A stretch of 63,829 bases of DNA, filler included, from Reticulomyxa filosa (Eukaryota; Protista; Foraminifera), in assembly GCA_000512085.1 (NCBI GenBank). It is 19 parts of 19 records of this genome, joined end to end, with 100 filler letters (N's around TTAATTAATTAA, not from the genome) between each part and the next. Parts side by side here need not be neighbours in the genome. Positions count along the whole stretch, not along the records: positions 18,915 to 24,316 come from ASPP01009404.1; 18 more parts are not named here. One strand, written 5' to 3'. This document shows positions 18,915 to 26,274 of the stretch, in pieces. The notes under the pieces are model-generated. The model had not been told where the DNA came from and did no database searches. It saw only the letters and a program-made list of their open reading frames with translations. Made by a program: the position numbers and the translations under genes. How positions within the stretch are numbered: position 1 is the stretch's first letter; the number at the start of each line of letters is the position of its first letter.

Positions 18915-18965
<51 letters not shown>

Positions 18966-18981
18966 TTATTTATAAACAAAC

Positions 18982-19591
18982 CTGTGTCACTGAGGGTGGC
19001 AAGTGTAATATCTTGAAACCTTCCTCTTTTTGTCAGATAAGACGTATACTCCCATTCCCATTGTAATGGAGGACCGAACATCAATCCTCCGTCTGTGACA
19101 GGGGTCAGTGCATTGATGGCCAACAGGTTACGATCACGACCGAAATATGCGTATCCTCCTACGATCAAGACAGAGATATTACTGTCGCGCATCCATTGCC
19201 CACTCTTATTTGTGTCTTGCAATAGTACTCTCGTCGGCAACTCGCTCGGATATACCCAACCAAACGATGTGCTTTCCCTTGGTATCCCTGCCTGCTCTTT
19301 CGCGTAGTCGTCCAGTGTCACTGCATATATCGGTGACAATTGTCCTATTATACTGTCCAACGCGATCTGCTTTGCTGATATCACCTGCAGAAATTCTTTC
19401 AATGTACTCAGCGACGGTTCTCTGTCGTTCATCACTTCCTCGAAGTTCAACTCAAAATACCCAACGTCATCCTTCGCTACTGCCAAGTACGAAAAATGAT
19501 TCGCTTTGTACTGCGTCTTTTGGATCCCAAAGGGACCAAGTTTATTAGGAAATACGTCTTTTGGAAAATTGTTGTCATAATGTACTTGCAT
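18982..19591 (-). CDS. Hypothetical protein (partial), divergent from the EF-Tu paralog
   Basis: About 200-codon GC-richer open frame ending at a GT donor followed by a TA repeat. Confidence 0.65.
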
Positions 19592-20033
19592 GTTACTATT
19601 TTATCTTTTTTTTTTCCTCCAAATTATATTATCTTTATTATTATTATTTTCGTTTATATTTTTTTTTCATGTTCCCTCTCTTTCCTCCCCTCCGTCAAAC
19701 CTTGTTTTTCTTTTTGAACAACTTCTTACTCTTAATGCCAAAAAAGATGTGACACATTTTTTTTCGCCAAAGGAAATGTTTTGGCGTTTCGGTTCTTCTT
19801 TTAATTCTTTTTACTAACGAATTTGAAAAAAGATAAATTAGATGATGCAACGAAAGAATACAACGGATTTTTTGGTATTTTTTAAGATGTAGTTCGTCAT
19901 GTTGTTATTTATTACGTGAACCGTGAAAAAGTACTTGCTCAGCTGCACACAAAGGTCGTCCAAAAAACTTCTAGTAATTTCGGTGTTTCCCCCTTTCCAT
20001 TTCTCGCTATATGTTTGTGTTGAAAGACGAAAA

Positions 20034-21743
20034 ATGCTACGATTTGCGCACTGTTTGAAGAGATCACCACTGTTTGGCATTCGTTATTTTTCGGGTTTGT
20101 CATATCAGGGTGCAGTGCGTGTGAAGGACCATGTGAACGTGGGTTGCGTGGGCGATGAAAGACATGGGAAGACATCACTGGCACACGCCATATGCAAAGT
20201 ACTGAGCGACATACCACAGTCAGACTCGCACACAATAGACTTTATGGCCCTAAATAAGTCAAAGTTAGCACTAAAGAAAGAAGACGGACACAATTTCCAT
20301 AACTTTGAATACGAAACACCTACTCGTCATTACCTGCACTGTGACAACCCAGGGTCTTTGGATTACATGAGCAATCTCATCACAGGCTCGTCGCAATTGG
20401 ACTGTATTGTCCTTTGTGTCAGCGCCGTAGACGGAATCGGCCCAATTTTCAAAGAGCAAATGCTTGTGTTGAAATACACAAACATTCATAAAGAAAAACT
20501 GCCTTTGATTGTCTTTGTCAACAAATTGGACCATCCTTCTTTCGATGTCGAGTTGCTTCCTTTGGTCGAACTCGAAGTAAAGGATCATCTCAAATCACTT
20601 GGTTTTGACAGTTTATAGAATTTATATTTATATATACATATACATATGCATATACATATGCTATCTCTCTCTCTCTCTCTCTCTCTGTCTTGCGCTACGC
20701 ACATGCACGCACGTATACGTATCCCAATGAGGAGCGCATGTTCGGGGTTTACATGTGTATATTACCTGCGGCATGTAAACTGTGTGCATGTACGTGTACG
20801 TATACACGCGTACGTTTACATGTATGTGTATATGCATGCACATATTTATTAAAAAAAAAAAAAAAAAAAGACATCGAAAATTCCATTTATATATGGCTCC
20901 GCTTTAGCGGCAACGGAGTCTCGTGAAACAAAGATTGGGAAAGAGCCGATATTAAGATTGATAAACGAACTGGATAAATTTGAATTGTTAAACAAAGAGA
21001 AAGAAAAAACAAATGAGGAAAATAAAGACTTTGTAATGCCAATACAAATCGTGTATAATTTGACAGGTGTTGGAATAGCGGTGATTGGGAAAGTGTTGCA
21101 AGGGAGCGTGGAGACACAAGAGAATGTGGAGTTGTATGGTGCGTGGAAAAAGCCAAGCACGACAACAGCTAAAGATCAGGCCAAATTGAAAAGTAAGAGC
21201 AGCGGATTGCAATCGGCACAACAAAAGCCCTTAAATGGGAGTGTGGGGAGTTTGAAACTGTTTGGCAAGTCGATCAAATGTGGCCTGCCCAGAGACTATC
21301 TCGGTGTTGCCTTGCATAGCAACAACATCACCACAAAGAATGTCAGACGTGGGATGACGGTCATTTTGAAACGCAAAACTCAAAAAAAAGGGTCCGACGG
21401 CGATAGCGACGACAACCCCGTCGAACATTGGAAACACACGTGGTCATGGACCTGTCAACTCACTTTGCTCGACGAACAACTTGGAGGCCGTCGCACGCCC
21501 ATTCAGAGTGGCTTTATGCCCACCTTTTATTTTTTGACCACAGAAGTCACTGGCACTGTGGACCTGCTTGATGTCTCCGGGTCGAAGGACCCCAATCTTA
21601 TGCTCTCCCCTGGAGACACCTCGACCCGTGTTCAAGTCACACTTTTGGAGTCGTGTGTCGTTTGGAAAGGCTTGACCTTTGTCGTCAGGGAACGTGGCCA
21701 GACCATTGGCTACGGTACTATTCTTGATGCCGTTGAAATTTAG
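20034..21743 (+). CDS. Highly divergent mitochondrial-type elongation factor Tu paralog (probable pseudo-GTPase), 2 exons
   Basis: Presequence MLRFAHCLKRSPLFGIRYFS; HVNVGCVGDERHGKTS, EYETPTRHYLHCDNPGS, FVNKLD, ELLPLVELEV, YGSAL, GGRRTPIQSGFMPTFYFLTTEVTG, PGD, FVVRERGQTIGYG. Intron about 20611-20870, with a 1-nt phase discrepancy. Confidence 0.9.
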
Positions 21744-22121
21744 TTGTTTTTTTTTTTTTTTAATTTGAATTATTAGTTTCTTAATTTTTTTTTGAGGGGG
21801 GGAGGAGGAGGAGAGGTACCTCCTCTTTTGTTTGTTTATCAAAAAAACTTGTATGTTTTTTAAACTCTTTTAGAACTCGATTACACGCACACACACACAC
21901 AACTCCGTTTATTGACGAGGATCCAGAACATCTCAAATTTTACTGATTTTTTTGTAAACTCTTTCAAAAAGAAACTTGGACTCCAAAAACAAATGGTCGT
22001 CATGTGAGAATCATAACCGTAGCTACAAAATTTGGACAGGTTTGAAAGATTTTGTAGAGCCCTTTTTTCTTCCTCTCTGCATTTGCTTGATCTTCGGCTT
22101 TTTTGTTTGGACAATTTACTA

Positions 22122-24004
22122 ATGCTGCAATGTCTCGAGTGGCTTCGTTCATGGCGGCCACGAAAACACCGCCATGGAGCAAAACAAATCGTTTTTGCGT
22201 CTCGTGATATCCTTCAACATCTACTGTCATATTTGCCTTTTAGTGACATTTGTTCATGTGCGCAAATTTCTTCATATTGGAATCTAATGTCAGACTTTTC
22301 ATTATTGGAAAGGTAAAAAAACTTTTTGCTTGTGTTTCCCCCTGTCTACGCTGAGACCTACACTTTTTTTTTTGTAAAACGGACTACAGAGAAGTCAAAA
22401 AAAGATGGTTGCATAGCAAAAAATTAAACGATATGCAACAACAGCTAGAAATAGTTCCTTTTGAGATTGACCAAGCAGAAGTCTACTGGAAGCATCGAAT
22501 TCTGATAAGAGAGTGCATACAAAAGTCTTTTGGTATAATACCCATATTGTAGTATTATCTAATTGAAAATGTAAATAAAGACTTTTTTTCTTCTGGTCAC
22601 TGCAACAGAACATACAAAAGACACATTTGAACAAATGGAACAAATAATGGCGTTTATGGAATTTCATAGCAACGATGTATCGGTCCAAATTGAAGGATTG
22701 CGATGGGTAATTGAAATTTTTGAGTTTTCGCCAAATAAAAGCACACAAAACGGTTGTACTACTTTACAAACAGTTTTAATTGAAAATAATAATCTTGGCA
22801 AAGCTAGTTCTCCCAAAATACCTCAGTGCTCGCCTAGTTCGTTGTCTTCTTTAGTCACAATACTGCAACAACACATGCATCAACCTTCAGTAGTTGCAAT
22901 CATCAGTAAAGCGCTCGGGATTTGGGCAATCCAAGGTCTTATGATATTTTCATTTATTTGTTTGTGATGAGAGGCTTAAAAAAAGGGGTATTTTGGTTAA
23001 TTTTCTGTTTGGTGTTGTTCAGAACAAAATCGACAGTATATTGGAGGAACTAAAGCAATGAAATTGTTCAAAAACTGCATTTCCTATAATTTTGAGCAAG
23101 TAAAAAAACAATGGAATGCACACTGCTTCGATGAATTGTCTAAGAACATGTTATGTTTATGCAATCTTTTGTGGTCACTTGTAATTATCAGTAGGCCTTT
23201 AGGAGGAATAGAAGGTGAAGCTTATCAAAGAAATGAAATTGAAAATTATCATAATGTTTCAATAATGAACAATCTGCGAATTCATTGTTCAGTGTTATCA
23301 ATAATCGAATATTTCGTTCGAGCAAAAGGACAACTAACACCAGAAACTATTGTCGGTGAAGCAAATTTTTATCTGTCTGACTCAGTCTACTTTGACTCAG
23401 AGCCGGAGCCATCCTTACAAGATAATGCGATCAGCTCAGATCATGCTCACTTAGTTTTAAGCAAATGCTATTGGCTGATGGTTAACTTGTCGTTAATTGA
23501 AGAAACTAAAAAATATTTAATTGACAATCACCTTATCGAATACATTGTCAATTCTCTTCAAATATATTCAAGTGCACTGTACAAAGAACTACAATATCGG
23601 GCTTGTTTTGCTCTAATTAACCTATGTATTCGTGGCCACGCTAAAAAACAAGTGTTGAAATATTGTGCAATTCCACTCATTATTCAGGCAATGAATCGAT
23701 TTTCAAACTGCTATTATTTTCAAAAATGTTGTACCAATGTCATTCGATCATTGTGTGCAACACATGGCTATTACACAGGTGCGTTTTTTTTCTCGATTTG
23801 TTGTTCGTTCTAAACTCCCTTCTTCCTTTTTTTGAAAGCCAAAAACCAATAAAAATAGAGGACGACTACATCATTTGTGAAACTATCCAAAAATATGAAG
23901 GGACGAAGGCTCTTAAGAAAATTAAAGAAAATTTTCCAACACAATCCAGTCTATTGTCTTTGGCTAACACTACCTTACATTTTATTCACCTTGCGTCTCA
24001 GTAA
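22122..24004 (+). CDS. F-box plus armadillo-repeat protein, 5 exons
   Basis: F-box DILQHLLSYLPFSDICSCAQISSYWNLMS; ARM-like repeats (SVQIEGLRW, ELQYRACFALINL, IPLIIQAMNRF); all introns phase-consistent GT-AG. Confidence 0.75.
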
Positions 24005-26274
24005 ACGAAACTCCAATTAAATTGGAATCTTGTGAAAACATAATAAATTGAATGAATTAGACGCCTCTTTTTAATTTGTTTTTGCCTCTGTTTTTTATTG
24101 TAACATTGTTTAATCTGTACGTGTGATTACTTAAAATTATTTAAGAATAATTAGAACTTTGAAAAATTAGTTAAAAAAGAAAAAATCTTGAGTTTTTCAT
24201 TGCAAAAAAAGATTTTTATGTGAATATTGACAAAGAAATATTGAAAAAAAAACAAAAAAGAAAAGGGAAGAAAAAAAAAAAAAATAAATAAAATAAAAAC
24301 AACGAAATAACTAAGTNNNNNNNNNNNNNNNNNNNNNNNNNNNNNNNNNNNNNNNNNNNNTTAATTAATTAANNNNNNNNNNNNNNNNNNNNNNNNNNNN
24401 NNNNNNNNNNNNNNNNTGTTTGTTTTTCATTAAGAAAATCTATCATCTTCATAAGGTGGCGTTTTAGGCGTTCAGTTTTTTTTGCAACATACTGTAAATT
24501 ATCCTATGACATTGTTTCAGGACAACATTCATTTACAAATTTAAGTGATATGTCTTTTGCTGATTGACTTTTCATTGGAATTGCAACATATCCCGTGAAG
24601 AACTCTATTATCGATAACTATAATTTGTTTCAGGTGATTTGCCAACTATGTACATAGCCACAATGTATAATACTCTTGTTGCATAGAAGTGTTGAATCCA
24701 TACTGACTTTGGATCGGCTCTTAGTTTTGTCACTTAGCAATTGAAATTCTTCTCAAAATTTTTTCAAGTATTTGTCAATTACTTGTAAGTATAATCTTTC
24801 TTTAATTAAGGTTACAATCTTTTTGAACCGGAATGCTGTGATAATGCATTTGAATGAAAATAAGCAAGTATGTCATGCTTCAACATACCATGTACTACAA
24901 TTTTGATAGTACATGTTATTAAATTCGTTTTCTATTGACAGATCCTTCTTATTAAATAATGAATGCTAACTCGAATGAAGGTCTACATTGTCGTTTTTCC
25001 TTCTGACAGTTTCCTTTTTATGTTTTTTATTTCGCTATAGTGTTCCCGAGATTCTACGTCGAATAATTTGTCGAAATTTCTTATTTCTCGTGATAATTCA
25101 AATGCTTTTTCGATTTGGCATTGAACATCGTTAAGATTATTTTCTTTGTGTTTATGCTTTTTTATTTAATCTTGATAACTATTAACTCCAATAATTGTTC
25201 TGATTTCTCCAATTACGATTACGATGATATTTTATTTGAAATGCCTTTTCTGTTCATTATCTCCTTGTATGTCACAATATTTGAACACTTTGTCTGAATT
25301 TTTATTAACTAACTAATTAGTTTTTGATCAACGTTTTGATCTTATCTTTAGCTTTCTTGGACTGCACTTTCCGTTTATATTAATGTCTTCGGCTCTTTGT
25401 TCAATATTATATGTCTCGTAGTCCATGTATTGCTTACAGAAGCGCTTGCATTAACATATCATCAAATGGTTTTATTCTATTCATTGCAGGGACATTGCGC
25501 TCTTCTGCATATTCTTGCTATCTGCTTTGATTCAAAAAGGTGTTATACATACATGCAAGGTAAATAATGAAATTAATTATAAACTTTATAAAGAAATATT
25601 TAAAAATATCATATTGAACATTGTGCATTGTACAGATTATGAACATAACAGTTGATGTCAAACATGACAATCTTGTTACAAAATCAAGATATTCAAAAAA
25701 CGTTACATCAAATTTCACAAAAAAATTCAAAAGAATCAAATTTTAATTGTTGTTCAAGTCTAATTTTTAAAAAGTATCTACGTGACTTAAAGATTCCCAA
25801 AAAAGATTAAAGATTTTGCAGGAGTGCACATAAACAAAACATTCATTTGCAAGATAAAATTTTTAAAATCATATGAAAAGATGAAATTTTATTTATTCAA
25901 TTTTTTCTGTAACCTCTGCATATCTCTAATATTATCAGCTTACAATACCGATAATTGAAATAAATCCTTCGTGTTTAATAACATTAACCGAACCAAAACA
26001 AGTTCAAATTGTGATACATTGATTTTTTATCTTTAAAATCTTGATTTAATCTTTTTCGATCATATTTGATTCAATCACTTTCACACAAATTAATCTTCGT
26101 TTCATCTAAAAGGATATCTTTTCATAATAATCTGCGATCGAATGTTTACTCGTAGTAATAAGACTATCTTCAAATTTAGCTTTTTCTTTTTCTATTTGAA
26201 AGGTTTTTGTTAGTTTGGTTGCTACCCGTTTTTTAAATGAAAATTGATGTGAACGTTCGTATTTTATTATCGAA

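Follow-up and report, generated by a model that had tools for sequence, protein, structure and literature searches.

The two-exon gene and its splicing

We analysed a gene of the foraminifer Reticulomyxa filosa that encodes a divergent relative of elongation factor Tu (EF-Tu). The window, i.e. the whole stretch of DNA that was analysed, comprises 63,829 nucleotides (nt) joined from 19 parts of the assembly GCA_000512085.1, and the gene lies in the part from ASPP01009404.1 (positions 18915-24316 of the window, 5402 nt). From the list of open reading frames (ORFs) and the DNA itself, we resolved two coding blocks on the plus strand, at 20034-20609 and 20871-21743. The frame of the first runs from an ATG at 20034 to an in-frame stop at 20616-20618, while that of the second opens at about 20871 and closes with the stop codon at 21741-21743. 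Spliced together, they encode the three-domain architecture of EF-Tu (G domain, beta-barrel domain II and domain III) in a form in which the catalytic histidine is replaced and the aminoacyl pocket is rebuilt. The features of the gene, all on the plus strand, are as follows.

20034-20609, plus strand: exon 1, with a presequence-like N-terminus and the EF-Tu G domain; its end falls at 20609 or 20610 depending on splice placement (Pfam, NCBIfam, PDB alignment, contig of a relative)
20034-20120, plus strand: N-terminal extension (MLRFAHCLKRSPLFGIRYFSGLSYQGAVR...), a putative mitochondrial presequence by composition and length
20151-20174, plus strand: G1 (P-loop), GDERHGKT for GHVDHGKT; H19D, V20E and D21R, with the GxxxxGKT frame kept
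20274-20303, plus strand: switch I remnant KKEDGHNFHN (HMMER alignment)
20343-20357, plus strand: G3, DNPGS for DCPGH; Asp80 and Gly83 kept, Cys81 replaced by Asn and His84 by Ser
20520-20531, plus strand: G4, NKLD, the guanine-specificity motif, kept (alignments to EF-Tu structures and TufB)
20610-20870, plus strand: spliceosomal intron of 261 nt, AT- and repeat-rich (stop in the exon 1 frame, contig of a relative, site shared with the orthologues L001, L003 and L004)
20871-21743, plus strand: exon 2, with the end of the G domain, domain II, linker and domain III (NCBIfam, PDB alignments, AlphaFold2 (AF2), Foldseek)
21030-21092, plus strand: start of domain II (FVMPIQIVYNLTGVGIAVIGK), with a rebuilt aminoacyl pocket; E215Q, D216I, F218Y, R223V, T228I and R230K
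21141-21242, plus strand: Lys/Ser/Thr-rich insertion in domain II, absent from canonical EF-Tu, variable in length across the family and of low model confidence
21249-21305, plus strand: family signature SLKLF...RDYLG for GVEMF...GENVG; E259K and N273Y
21369-21431, plus strand: Lys-rich, acidic insertion in the linker between domains II and III (low predicted local distance difference test score, pLDDT; alignments)
21432-21740, plus strand: domain III (GGRRTP, FYFLTTEVTG, FVVRERGQTIGYG), matching Pfam GTP_EFTU_D3 with 61.7 bits and EF-Tu residues ~304-393, pLDDT >90

The first-pass annotation had seen no premature stop in 20034-21743. This holds for the spliced form, but not for the genomic sequence, in which the stop at 20616-20618 lies within the 261-nt intron. 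The intron contains a (TC)n run at ~20665-20688, CA/TG-rich repeats and a poly-A run of ~20 nt. With GT-AG borders as assembled (GT at 20611 and AG at 20870), the two exons are one base out of frame. Judging from the in-frame junction in a relative (see below), either the borders are of the AG..AG or GT..GA type or the assembly carries a one-base homopolymer slip.

Among public runs, a single one covered part of the gene, a run of 2021 available as contigs and guessed to be RNA, from an organism ~93-95% identical to R. filosa. Here, a 688-nt contig matches 20081-20608 and then 20881-20988 with 11 letters between the two blocks, and the 261-nt intron is absent. The junction of the relative is in frame, joining exon 1 up to 20609 to exon 2 from 20871, whereas splicing at the assembled GT-AG borders would leave 12 letters and shift the frame. 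After 20988 this contig continues only at 21069, i.e. it skips 80 nt, while a second contig keeps this stretch. Since two splice forms occur in one run, the run behaves like RNA. The skipped segment itself (20987-21066) has exact GT..AG ends inside exon 2, and its removal would shift the frame and delete the conserved FVMPIQIVYNLTG motif; aberrant or alternative splicing (an 'exitron') is the probable cause. The relative also diverges in the insertion of the II-III linker, where a contig end lies loose before 21412.

The comparison with this relative also gives a direct measure of selection. Third codon positions hold 32 of the 40 listed differences, and 31 codon changes are synonymous compared to 8 non-synonymous ones. 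Over the 312 covered codons, the rate of synonymous change (dS) is 0.17 and that of non-synonymous change (dN) 0.011 (Nei-Gojobori), i.e. a dN/dS of ~0.06, and the DNPGS motif differs by one synonymous change and nothing else. The gene is under strong purifying selection.

The public record shows little of this. The deposited protein, ETO24155.1 (UniRef X6NCV6, here P0001), which a word-index search with exon 2 retrieved, is named 'translation elongation factor Tu' and spans exon 2 only (20838-21743). The model starts at an intronic ATG (MHIFIKKKKKK...), treats the GSAL segment as intron and lacks the exon of the G domain, so that domains II and III are all that the named protein contains. Because the record is restricted to exon 2, users of the databases do not get to see the degenerate G domain. 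Indeed, a word-index search with exon 1 in a collection of 5.8 billion proteins returned no match, not even a model of R. filosa exon 1.

Residues kept and replaced in the three domains

The two exons of R. filosa were searched, scored and folded separately, and for a full-length fold we used a naturally intronless orthologue, P0011. Exon 1 aligns to residues 8-163 of EF-Tu in the PDB and scores 116-120 bits with the NCBIfam EF-Tu models and 81 bits with Pfam GTP_EFTU, while exon 2 reaches 94-104 bits with NCBIfam EF-Tu in addition to its match to Pfam GTP_EFTU_D3. The Pfam domain II model scores 17.7 bits in exon 2, below threshold, because the Lys-rich insertion splits the domain. With the two exons scored separately, TIGR00485 gave 115.9 and 93.6 bits (cut-off 522) and PRK00049 gave 119.2 and 104.3 bits (cut-off 449). 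Even summed (~210-225 bits), the exon scores stay below half of the curated EF-Tu cut-offs, and EF-Tu is still the best family by far. The presence of all three EF-Tu domains, as originally proposed, is borne out by these matches and by the AF2 model of exon 2, whose best Foldseek matches are domains II and III of EF-Tu. This model has a pLDDT of 83.9, with low confidence in the two insertions only.

The full-length AF2 model of P0011, built from an alignment of the family plus canonical sequences, reached a pLDDT of 78 and a predicted template modelling (TM) score of 0.81, with the N-terminal 38 residues disordered. The PDB structures that match it best show EF-Tu in the GTP form, in ternary complexes or bound to the ribosome (TM score 0.83-0.87), compared to ~0.52 for the GDP form. 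In a protein-language-model atlas, P0011 lies nearest to eukaryotic clusters named 'EF-Tu, mitochondrial-like', which we take as a lead only.

The protein was further proposed to be targeted to mitochondria by an Arg/Ser-rich presequence. The extension is indeed basic and poor in acidic residues: in R. filosa, 32 residues precede the HVNVG strand compared to 11 in Escherichia coli, with 6 Arg/Lys and 1 acidic residue among them. The five readable N-termini of the family are 28-43 residues long, extend 17-32 residues past the E. coli start and are rich in Arg, Lys, Ser and Thr with 0-1 acidic residues. Targeting itself is suggested by this presequence-like character. At the other end, the protein stops at the canonical EF-Tu C-terminus (..GTILDAVEI), without a C-terminal extension.

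How far has the GTPase centre changed? We compared the motifs by HMMER alignments to solved EF-Tu structures and by a MAFFT alignment to E. coli TufB (from NC_000913), and both reproduced every substitution that had been listed by eye, including the Ser codon TCT at catalytic position 84 (20355-20357). In switch I, the sequence E-RGITINTAH has become EDG--HNFHN, with two residues deleted, Arg58, Ile60 and Thr61 absent and His66 replaced by Asn. Further downstream, DYVKNM reads DYMSNL. The alignments likewise confirm that NKxD, GSAL (G5, at 20895-20906 in exon 2) and the domain III core (GGRRTP..FYFLTTEVTG) are kept and that Lys-rich insertions interrupt domain II and precede domain III. At the level of motifs, the protein thus has the profile of a pseudo-GTPase, with the catalytic residues absent and G1, the Asp and Gly of G3, G4 and G5 retained. 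From canonical EF-Tu it departs in its curated score, in His84 and the Val20/Ile60 gate, in RGITI with Thr61, and in the aminoacyl pocket.

The contacts to the transfer RNA (tRNA) end were also described as changed, and the substitutions are real. At the start of domain II, SGRG reads TGVG with Gly222 and Gly224 kept; GVEMF reads SLKLF, with the E259K codon at 21255-21257; and RDYLG replaces GENVG at 21291-21305. All of the pocket residues H66, E215, D216, F218, T228, E259 and N273 are replaced, by N, Q, I, Y, I, K and Y, respectively. What does not stand is that the pocket was simply lost. It is instead rebuilt with residues that are fixed within the family, so that an altered ligand is as likely as none. 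The altered positions are those that set which aminoacyl group fits, as seen in the EF-Tu:Phe-tRNA complex and the engineered EF-Sep.

The orthologue family and its conservation pattern

Is this combination of kept and replaced residues peculiar to R. filosa? To find relatives, we built a profile from exon 2 and the first relative and searched it with HMMER against 1.84 billion representative proteins. Only six proteins scored at E<1e-30, followed by a drop to the ~100-bit level of ordinary EF-Tu. The five members other than R. filosa come from marine and other metagenomes, with two scaffolds of TARA Oceans, three further ENA assemblies and one Logan run as sources. The G domain motifs of four family members are:

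L001: G1 GDEKHGKT, G3 DNPGD, G4 NKCD
P0011 (full length, intronless, on contig L002): G1 GDYQSGKS, G3 DNPGQ, G4 NKID
L003: G1 GDQGCGKT, G3 DNPGN, G4 TKLD
L004: G1 GDESHGKT, G3 DNSGN, G4 NKLD

His84 is found in none of the five family G domains that could be read (R. filosa, L001, P0011, L003 and L004), where the position holds S/D/N/N/Q. Orthologues that lack the histidine and share the pocket changes H66N, E215Q, E259K and N273Y therefore exist, while residue 84 itself varies. In L001, L003 and L004 the frame breaks at the site of the R. filosa intron, directly after G[FY]D, and in L001 the intron is in phase 1, with clean GT-AG borders. All seven domain II-III sequences share SLKLF and DYLG without change, and among 156 retrieved proteins the SLKLF/RDYLG signature occurs in the six family proteins only. 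In a tree of domains II and III, from which P0012 was left out as it contains an unspliced intron, the family forms one clade (100/100) with a long stem and long internal branches. The members are just 40-50% identical to one another, and the clade is therefore old.

We then counted, column by column and including the R. filosa exon pieces, how the family treats the 162 positions that are invariant in the five canonical references assessed. Thirty of them are kept in every member, including G18, G23, K24, D80, G83, K136, D138 and N90, but also E150 and E152 in helix D, G222 and G224 in the domain II loop, and F261, R288 and R377. In contrast, no member keeps any of 47 others, and at many of these a single new residue is fixed: H19D, H66N and C81N in 5/5 members, E215Q, R223V, R230K and E259K in 7/7, N273Y as part of the invariant DYLG, and R333L in 6/7. 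Other positions vary, namely position 84, position 21 (R/K/G/S/Q) and position 89 (S/P/T/T/S). Compared to E. coli, switch I is 10% identical, the surroundings of G1 and G4 57-58% and helix D 48%. These columns show selection on the nucleotide pocket and on part of the partner surfaces and none on the hydrolytic machinery; the aminoacyl pocket shows rebuilding rather than erosion. The family-wide retention of G1, of the Asp and Gly of G3, of G4 ([N/T]KxD) and of G5 (GSA[L/H]) lends support to the initial suggestion that the protein may bind nucleotide and would be unable to decode canonically.

Attempts to widen or root the family gave little more. A word-index search with the family alignment found no new member, and it also missed known ones. 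A scan of metagenome contigs of the Joint Genome Institute (JGI) for the SLKLF pattern returned L008, which was rejected as a member since it is a bacterial str-operon EF-Tu. Among the matches of canonical type we looked for a labelled eukaryotic mitochondrial EF-Tu to root the tree, and these were mostly chimeric metagenome fragments, so that an origin from the mitochondrial lineage is not demonstrable by phylogeny.

Some observations concern the contigs of the family members and the surroundings of the R. filosa gene. The L004 gene has at least four exons, compared to two in R. filosa and one in L002, and the protein called from it, P0012 (L004 6001-6630), reads through a short intron in domain III (VCTGLYHSFAALLSCSFAVVVSVERQ). 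The L002 contig (1-4076) carries five genes on one strand with spacers of ~10-85 nt, which points to a very compact, AT-rich eukaryotic genome. In the window, the downstream neighbour at 22032-24004 (plus strand) is apparently a multi-exon gene with an F-box-like domain at 22032-22313 (Pfam, 30.5 bits), followed by a weak match to armadillo (ARM) repeats at 23058-23810. Upstream, an ORF on the minus strand (18917-19591, 225+ amino acids) without Pfam match is cut by the edge of the piece and ends near an AT-rich (TATA)n repeat at this edge.

A proposed repurposed pseudo-GTPase and its alternatives

Taken together, the R. filosa locus is a functional nuclear gene of a small, old and previously undescribed clade derived from EF-Tu, with a putative presequence of mitochondrial type. 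In this clade, everything that lets the ribosome trigger the GTPase of EF-Tu is lost or without constraint. We think it rather likely that its members are paralogues repurposed as pseudo-GTPases. We propose that, with GTP bound, the protein remains in the closed, GTP-like conformation, since hydrolysis by the canonical route of sarcin-ricin loop (SRL) and His84 would be impossible. It could then dock on the usual partners of EF-Tu, the L7/L12 stalk and the factor site of the mitoribosome and/or EF-Ts, which is the least secure step of this proposal. Binding of the tRNA body would be possible, while ordinary aminoacyl-tRNA would not be delivered. In this way, the protein might serve the very derived mitochondrial translation of Retaria as an adaptor or a ligand that does not hydrolyse GTP, in assembly, quality control or regulation rather than in decoding.

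The setting is an unusual one. Retarian mitochondrial genomes hold no genes for ribosomal proteins, essentially no tRNA genes and truncated, fragmented ribosomal RNAs (rRNAs) (PMC10127745, PMC13421374), and elsewhere mitoribosomes with fragmented rRNA recruit repurposed non-ribosomal proteins (PMC13421374). A survey of translational GTPases describes, for mitochondria, only the protostome duplication into EF-Tu1 and EF-Tu2 (PMC4342817). In this survey and in a full-text literature search we found no description of a histidine-less mitochondrial EF-Tu, of an R. filosa EF-Tu or of such a clade, nor any described EF-Tu-like family with these substitutions in which the protein could be placed.

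Several points weigh against the repurposed paralogue. The word paralogue is itself an assumption. Nucleotide binding, absent hydrolysis, localisation and contact with the ribosome or EF-Ts are predictions from motifs, and one member (L003) has TKLD in place of NKxD. All residues at position 84 are polar, and residual or differently activated hydrolysis may be possible. Splicing was seen in the run of the relative, whose assignment to RNA is a guess, and among public runs we found no RNA run of R. filosa itself.

A first alternative, to which we give a low probability, is that the protein is a GTP-locked carrier of tRNA with changed specificity, which would escort or sequester deacylated imported tRNA, or misacylated or negatively charged aminoacyl-tRNA. 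It would bind this tRNA by the acceptor/T-arm, with the rebuilt pocket for the 3' end choosing the ligand, and would not hand it to the ribosome. Positions H66, E215, D216, F218, T228 and N273 are known specificity positions, and their replacements are fixed in the family rather than random, with two acidic residues lost and a lysine gained by E259K. Asn90, Arg288, an Arg318-like residue and Arg377 are kept, and the closed form of the P0011 model would suit a carrier. However, the family has lost Lys89, Gln329 and Arg333, and switch I, a support of the tRNA-binding conformation, is not conserved. RNA binding would moreover be a proposal from sequence, and an EF-Tu-type escort has, to our knowledge, no mitochondrial precedent. 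In favour of a carrier is also that Retaria import essentially all of their mitochondrial tRNAs (PMC10127745, PMC13421374).

Equally improbable in our view is that the protein is the only mitochondrial EF-Tu of Foraminifera or Retaria and delivers aminoacyl-tRNA, with hydrolysis by the polar residue at position 84 and/or another activator on the mitoribosome with its fragmented rRNA. The pocket changes would then be co-adaptations to imported cytosolic tRNAs, in a mitochondrial translation that is highly derived in Retaria, and the strong purifying selection as well as the retained nucleotide motifs, helix D, domain II Gly loop, Arg288 and Asn90, and domain III core would fit a working factor. 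Position 84 is always polar, and a glutamine is catalytic at the same place in Ras-like GTPases. A second foraminiferal EF-Tu came up in none of our searches, none of which was able to find one. On the other hand, His84 is a universal feature of translational GTPases, and an H84A exchange leaves no ribosome-stimulated hydrolysis; within the family the position is not fixed and looks like a lost constraint. Thr61, the hydrophobic gate, Asp21 and six pocket residues have changed all at once, and other lineages whose mitochondrial tRNAs are all imported, trypanosomatids for example, keep a canonical EF-Tu. The bolder form of this idea, in which the protein is the only EF-Tu in foraminiferal and perhaps all retarian mitochondria and hydrolysis is dispensable or differently triggered on a mitoribosome with fragmented rRNA, seems to us a shade less probable still.

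Finally, a decaying duplicate, a pseudogene or an artefact of annotation or assembly, for which the many lost near-invariant residues, the GT-AG intron that is one base out of frame as assembled and the fragmentary public gene model might speak and whose expected marks had been named in advance as missing expression, a dN/dS near 1 and missing orthologues, is very improbable and was rejected, as both exon frames are intact, the relative yields a spliced, transcript-like contig with an in-frame junction and a dN/dS of ~0.06, five orthologues show the same derived, family-fixed residues, an intron site is shared, and the fold is confidently predicted.

EF-Tu is among the most conserved proteins, and the clade is thus a natural experiment in the repurposing of a translation factor: it has passed through long purifying selection without His84, switch I or the canonical aminoacyl pocket, and yet the nucleotide pocket was kept. 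If the protein is a paralogue, it would be a new accessory factor of the little-understood mitochondrial translation of Retaria. If it should prove to be the sole factor, the textbook rule of the universal catalytic histidine would be overturned.

How does the family compare to known systems? With canonical EF-Tu (TufA/TufB, TUFM; TIGR00485) it shares the architecture and fold, GK[ST], DxxG, NKxD, GSAL, helix D and the domain III core, whereas the R. filosa protein lacks His84, Thr61 with RGITI, the Val20/Ile60 gate and Asp21, has a rebuilt pocket and carries Lys-rich insertions. In SelB and the engineered EF-Sep the same pocket positions are altered for the choice of the aminoacyl group; these remodelled positions are shared with the R. 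filosa protein, but both factors differ from it by their intact His84 and full GTPase. The protostome EF-Tu paralogues are working GTPases that deliver truncated tRNAs and carry C-terminal extensions. Compared to the protostome mitochondrial EF-Tu2, the R. filosa protein has lost the catalytic set, lacks the C-terminal extension and belongs to a foraminifer and microbial eukaryotes. The mitochondrial EF-Tu1 and EF-Tu2 of nematodes and protostomes are likewise lineage-specific duplicates with altered tRNA recognition (PMC4342817, PMC1636415).

Four further matches of the profile search (P0018, P0027, P0055 and P0146) are EF-Tu-like proteins of apparently bacterial origin in which the P-loop and/or DxPGH is broken. 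They lack SLKLF and RDYLG, are unrelated to the family and, judging from their motifs, probably do not bind nucleotide; two of the four carry an extra C-terminal copy of domain II. The closest functional analogy may instead be Ski7, the pseudo-GTPase of yeast related to eEF1A and Hbs1, in which nucleotide binding is kept but the catalytic histidine is missing, and whose role is that of an adaptor rather than of a decoding factor. Ski7, however, is cytosolic, belongs to the eEF1A lineage and partners with the exosome and the Ski complex, so that the ancestry which it shares with the R. filosa protein is that of the superfamily only.

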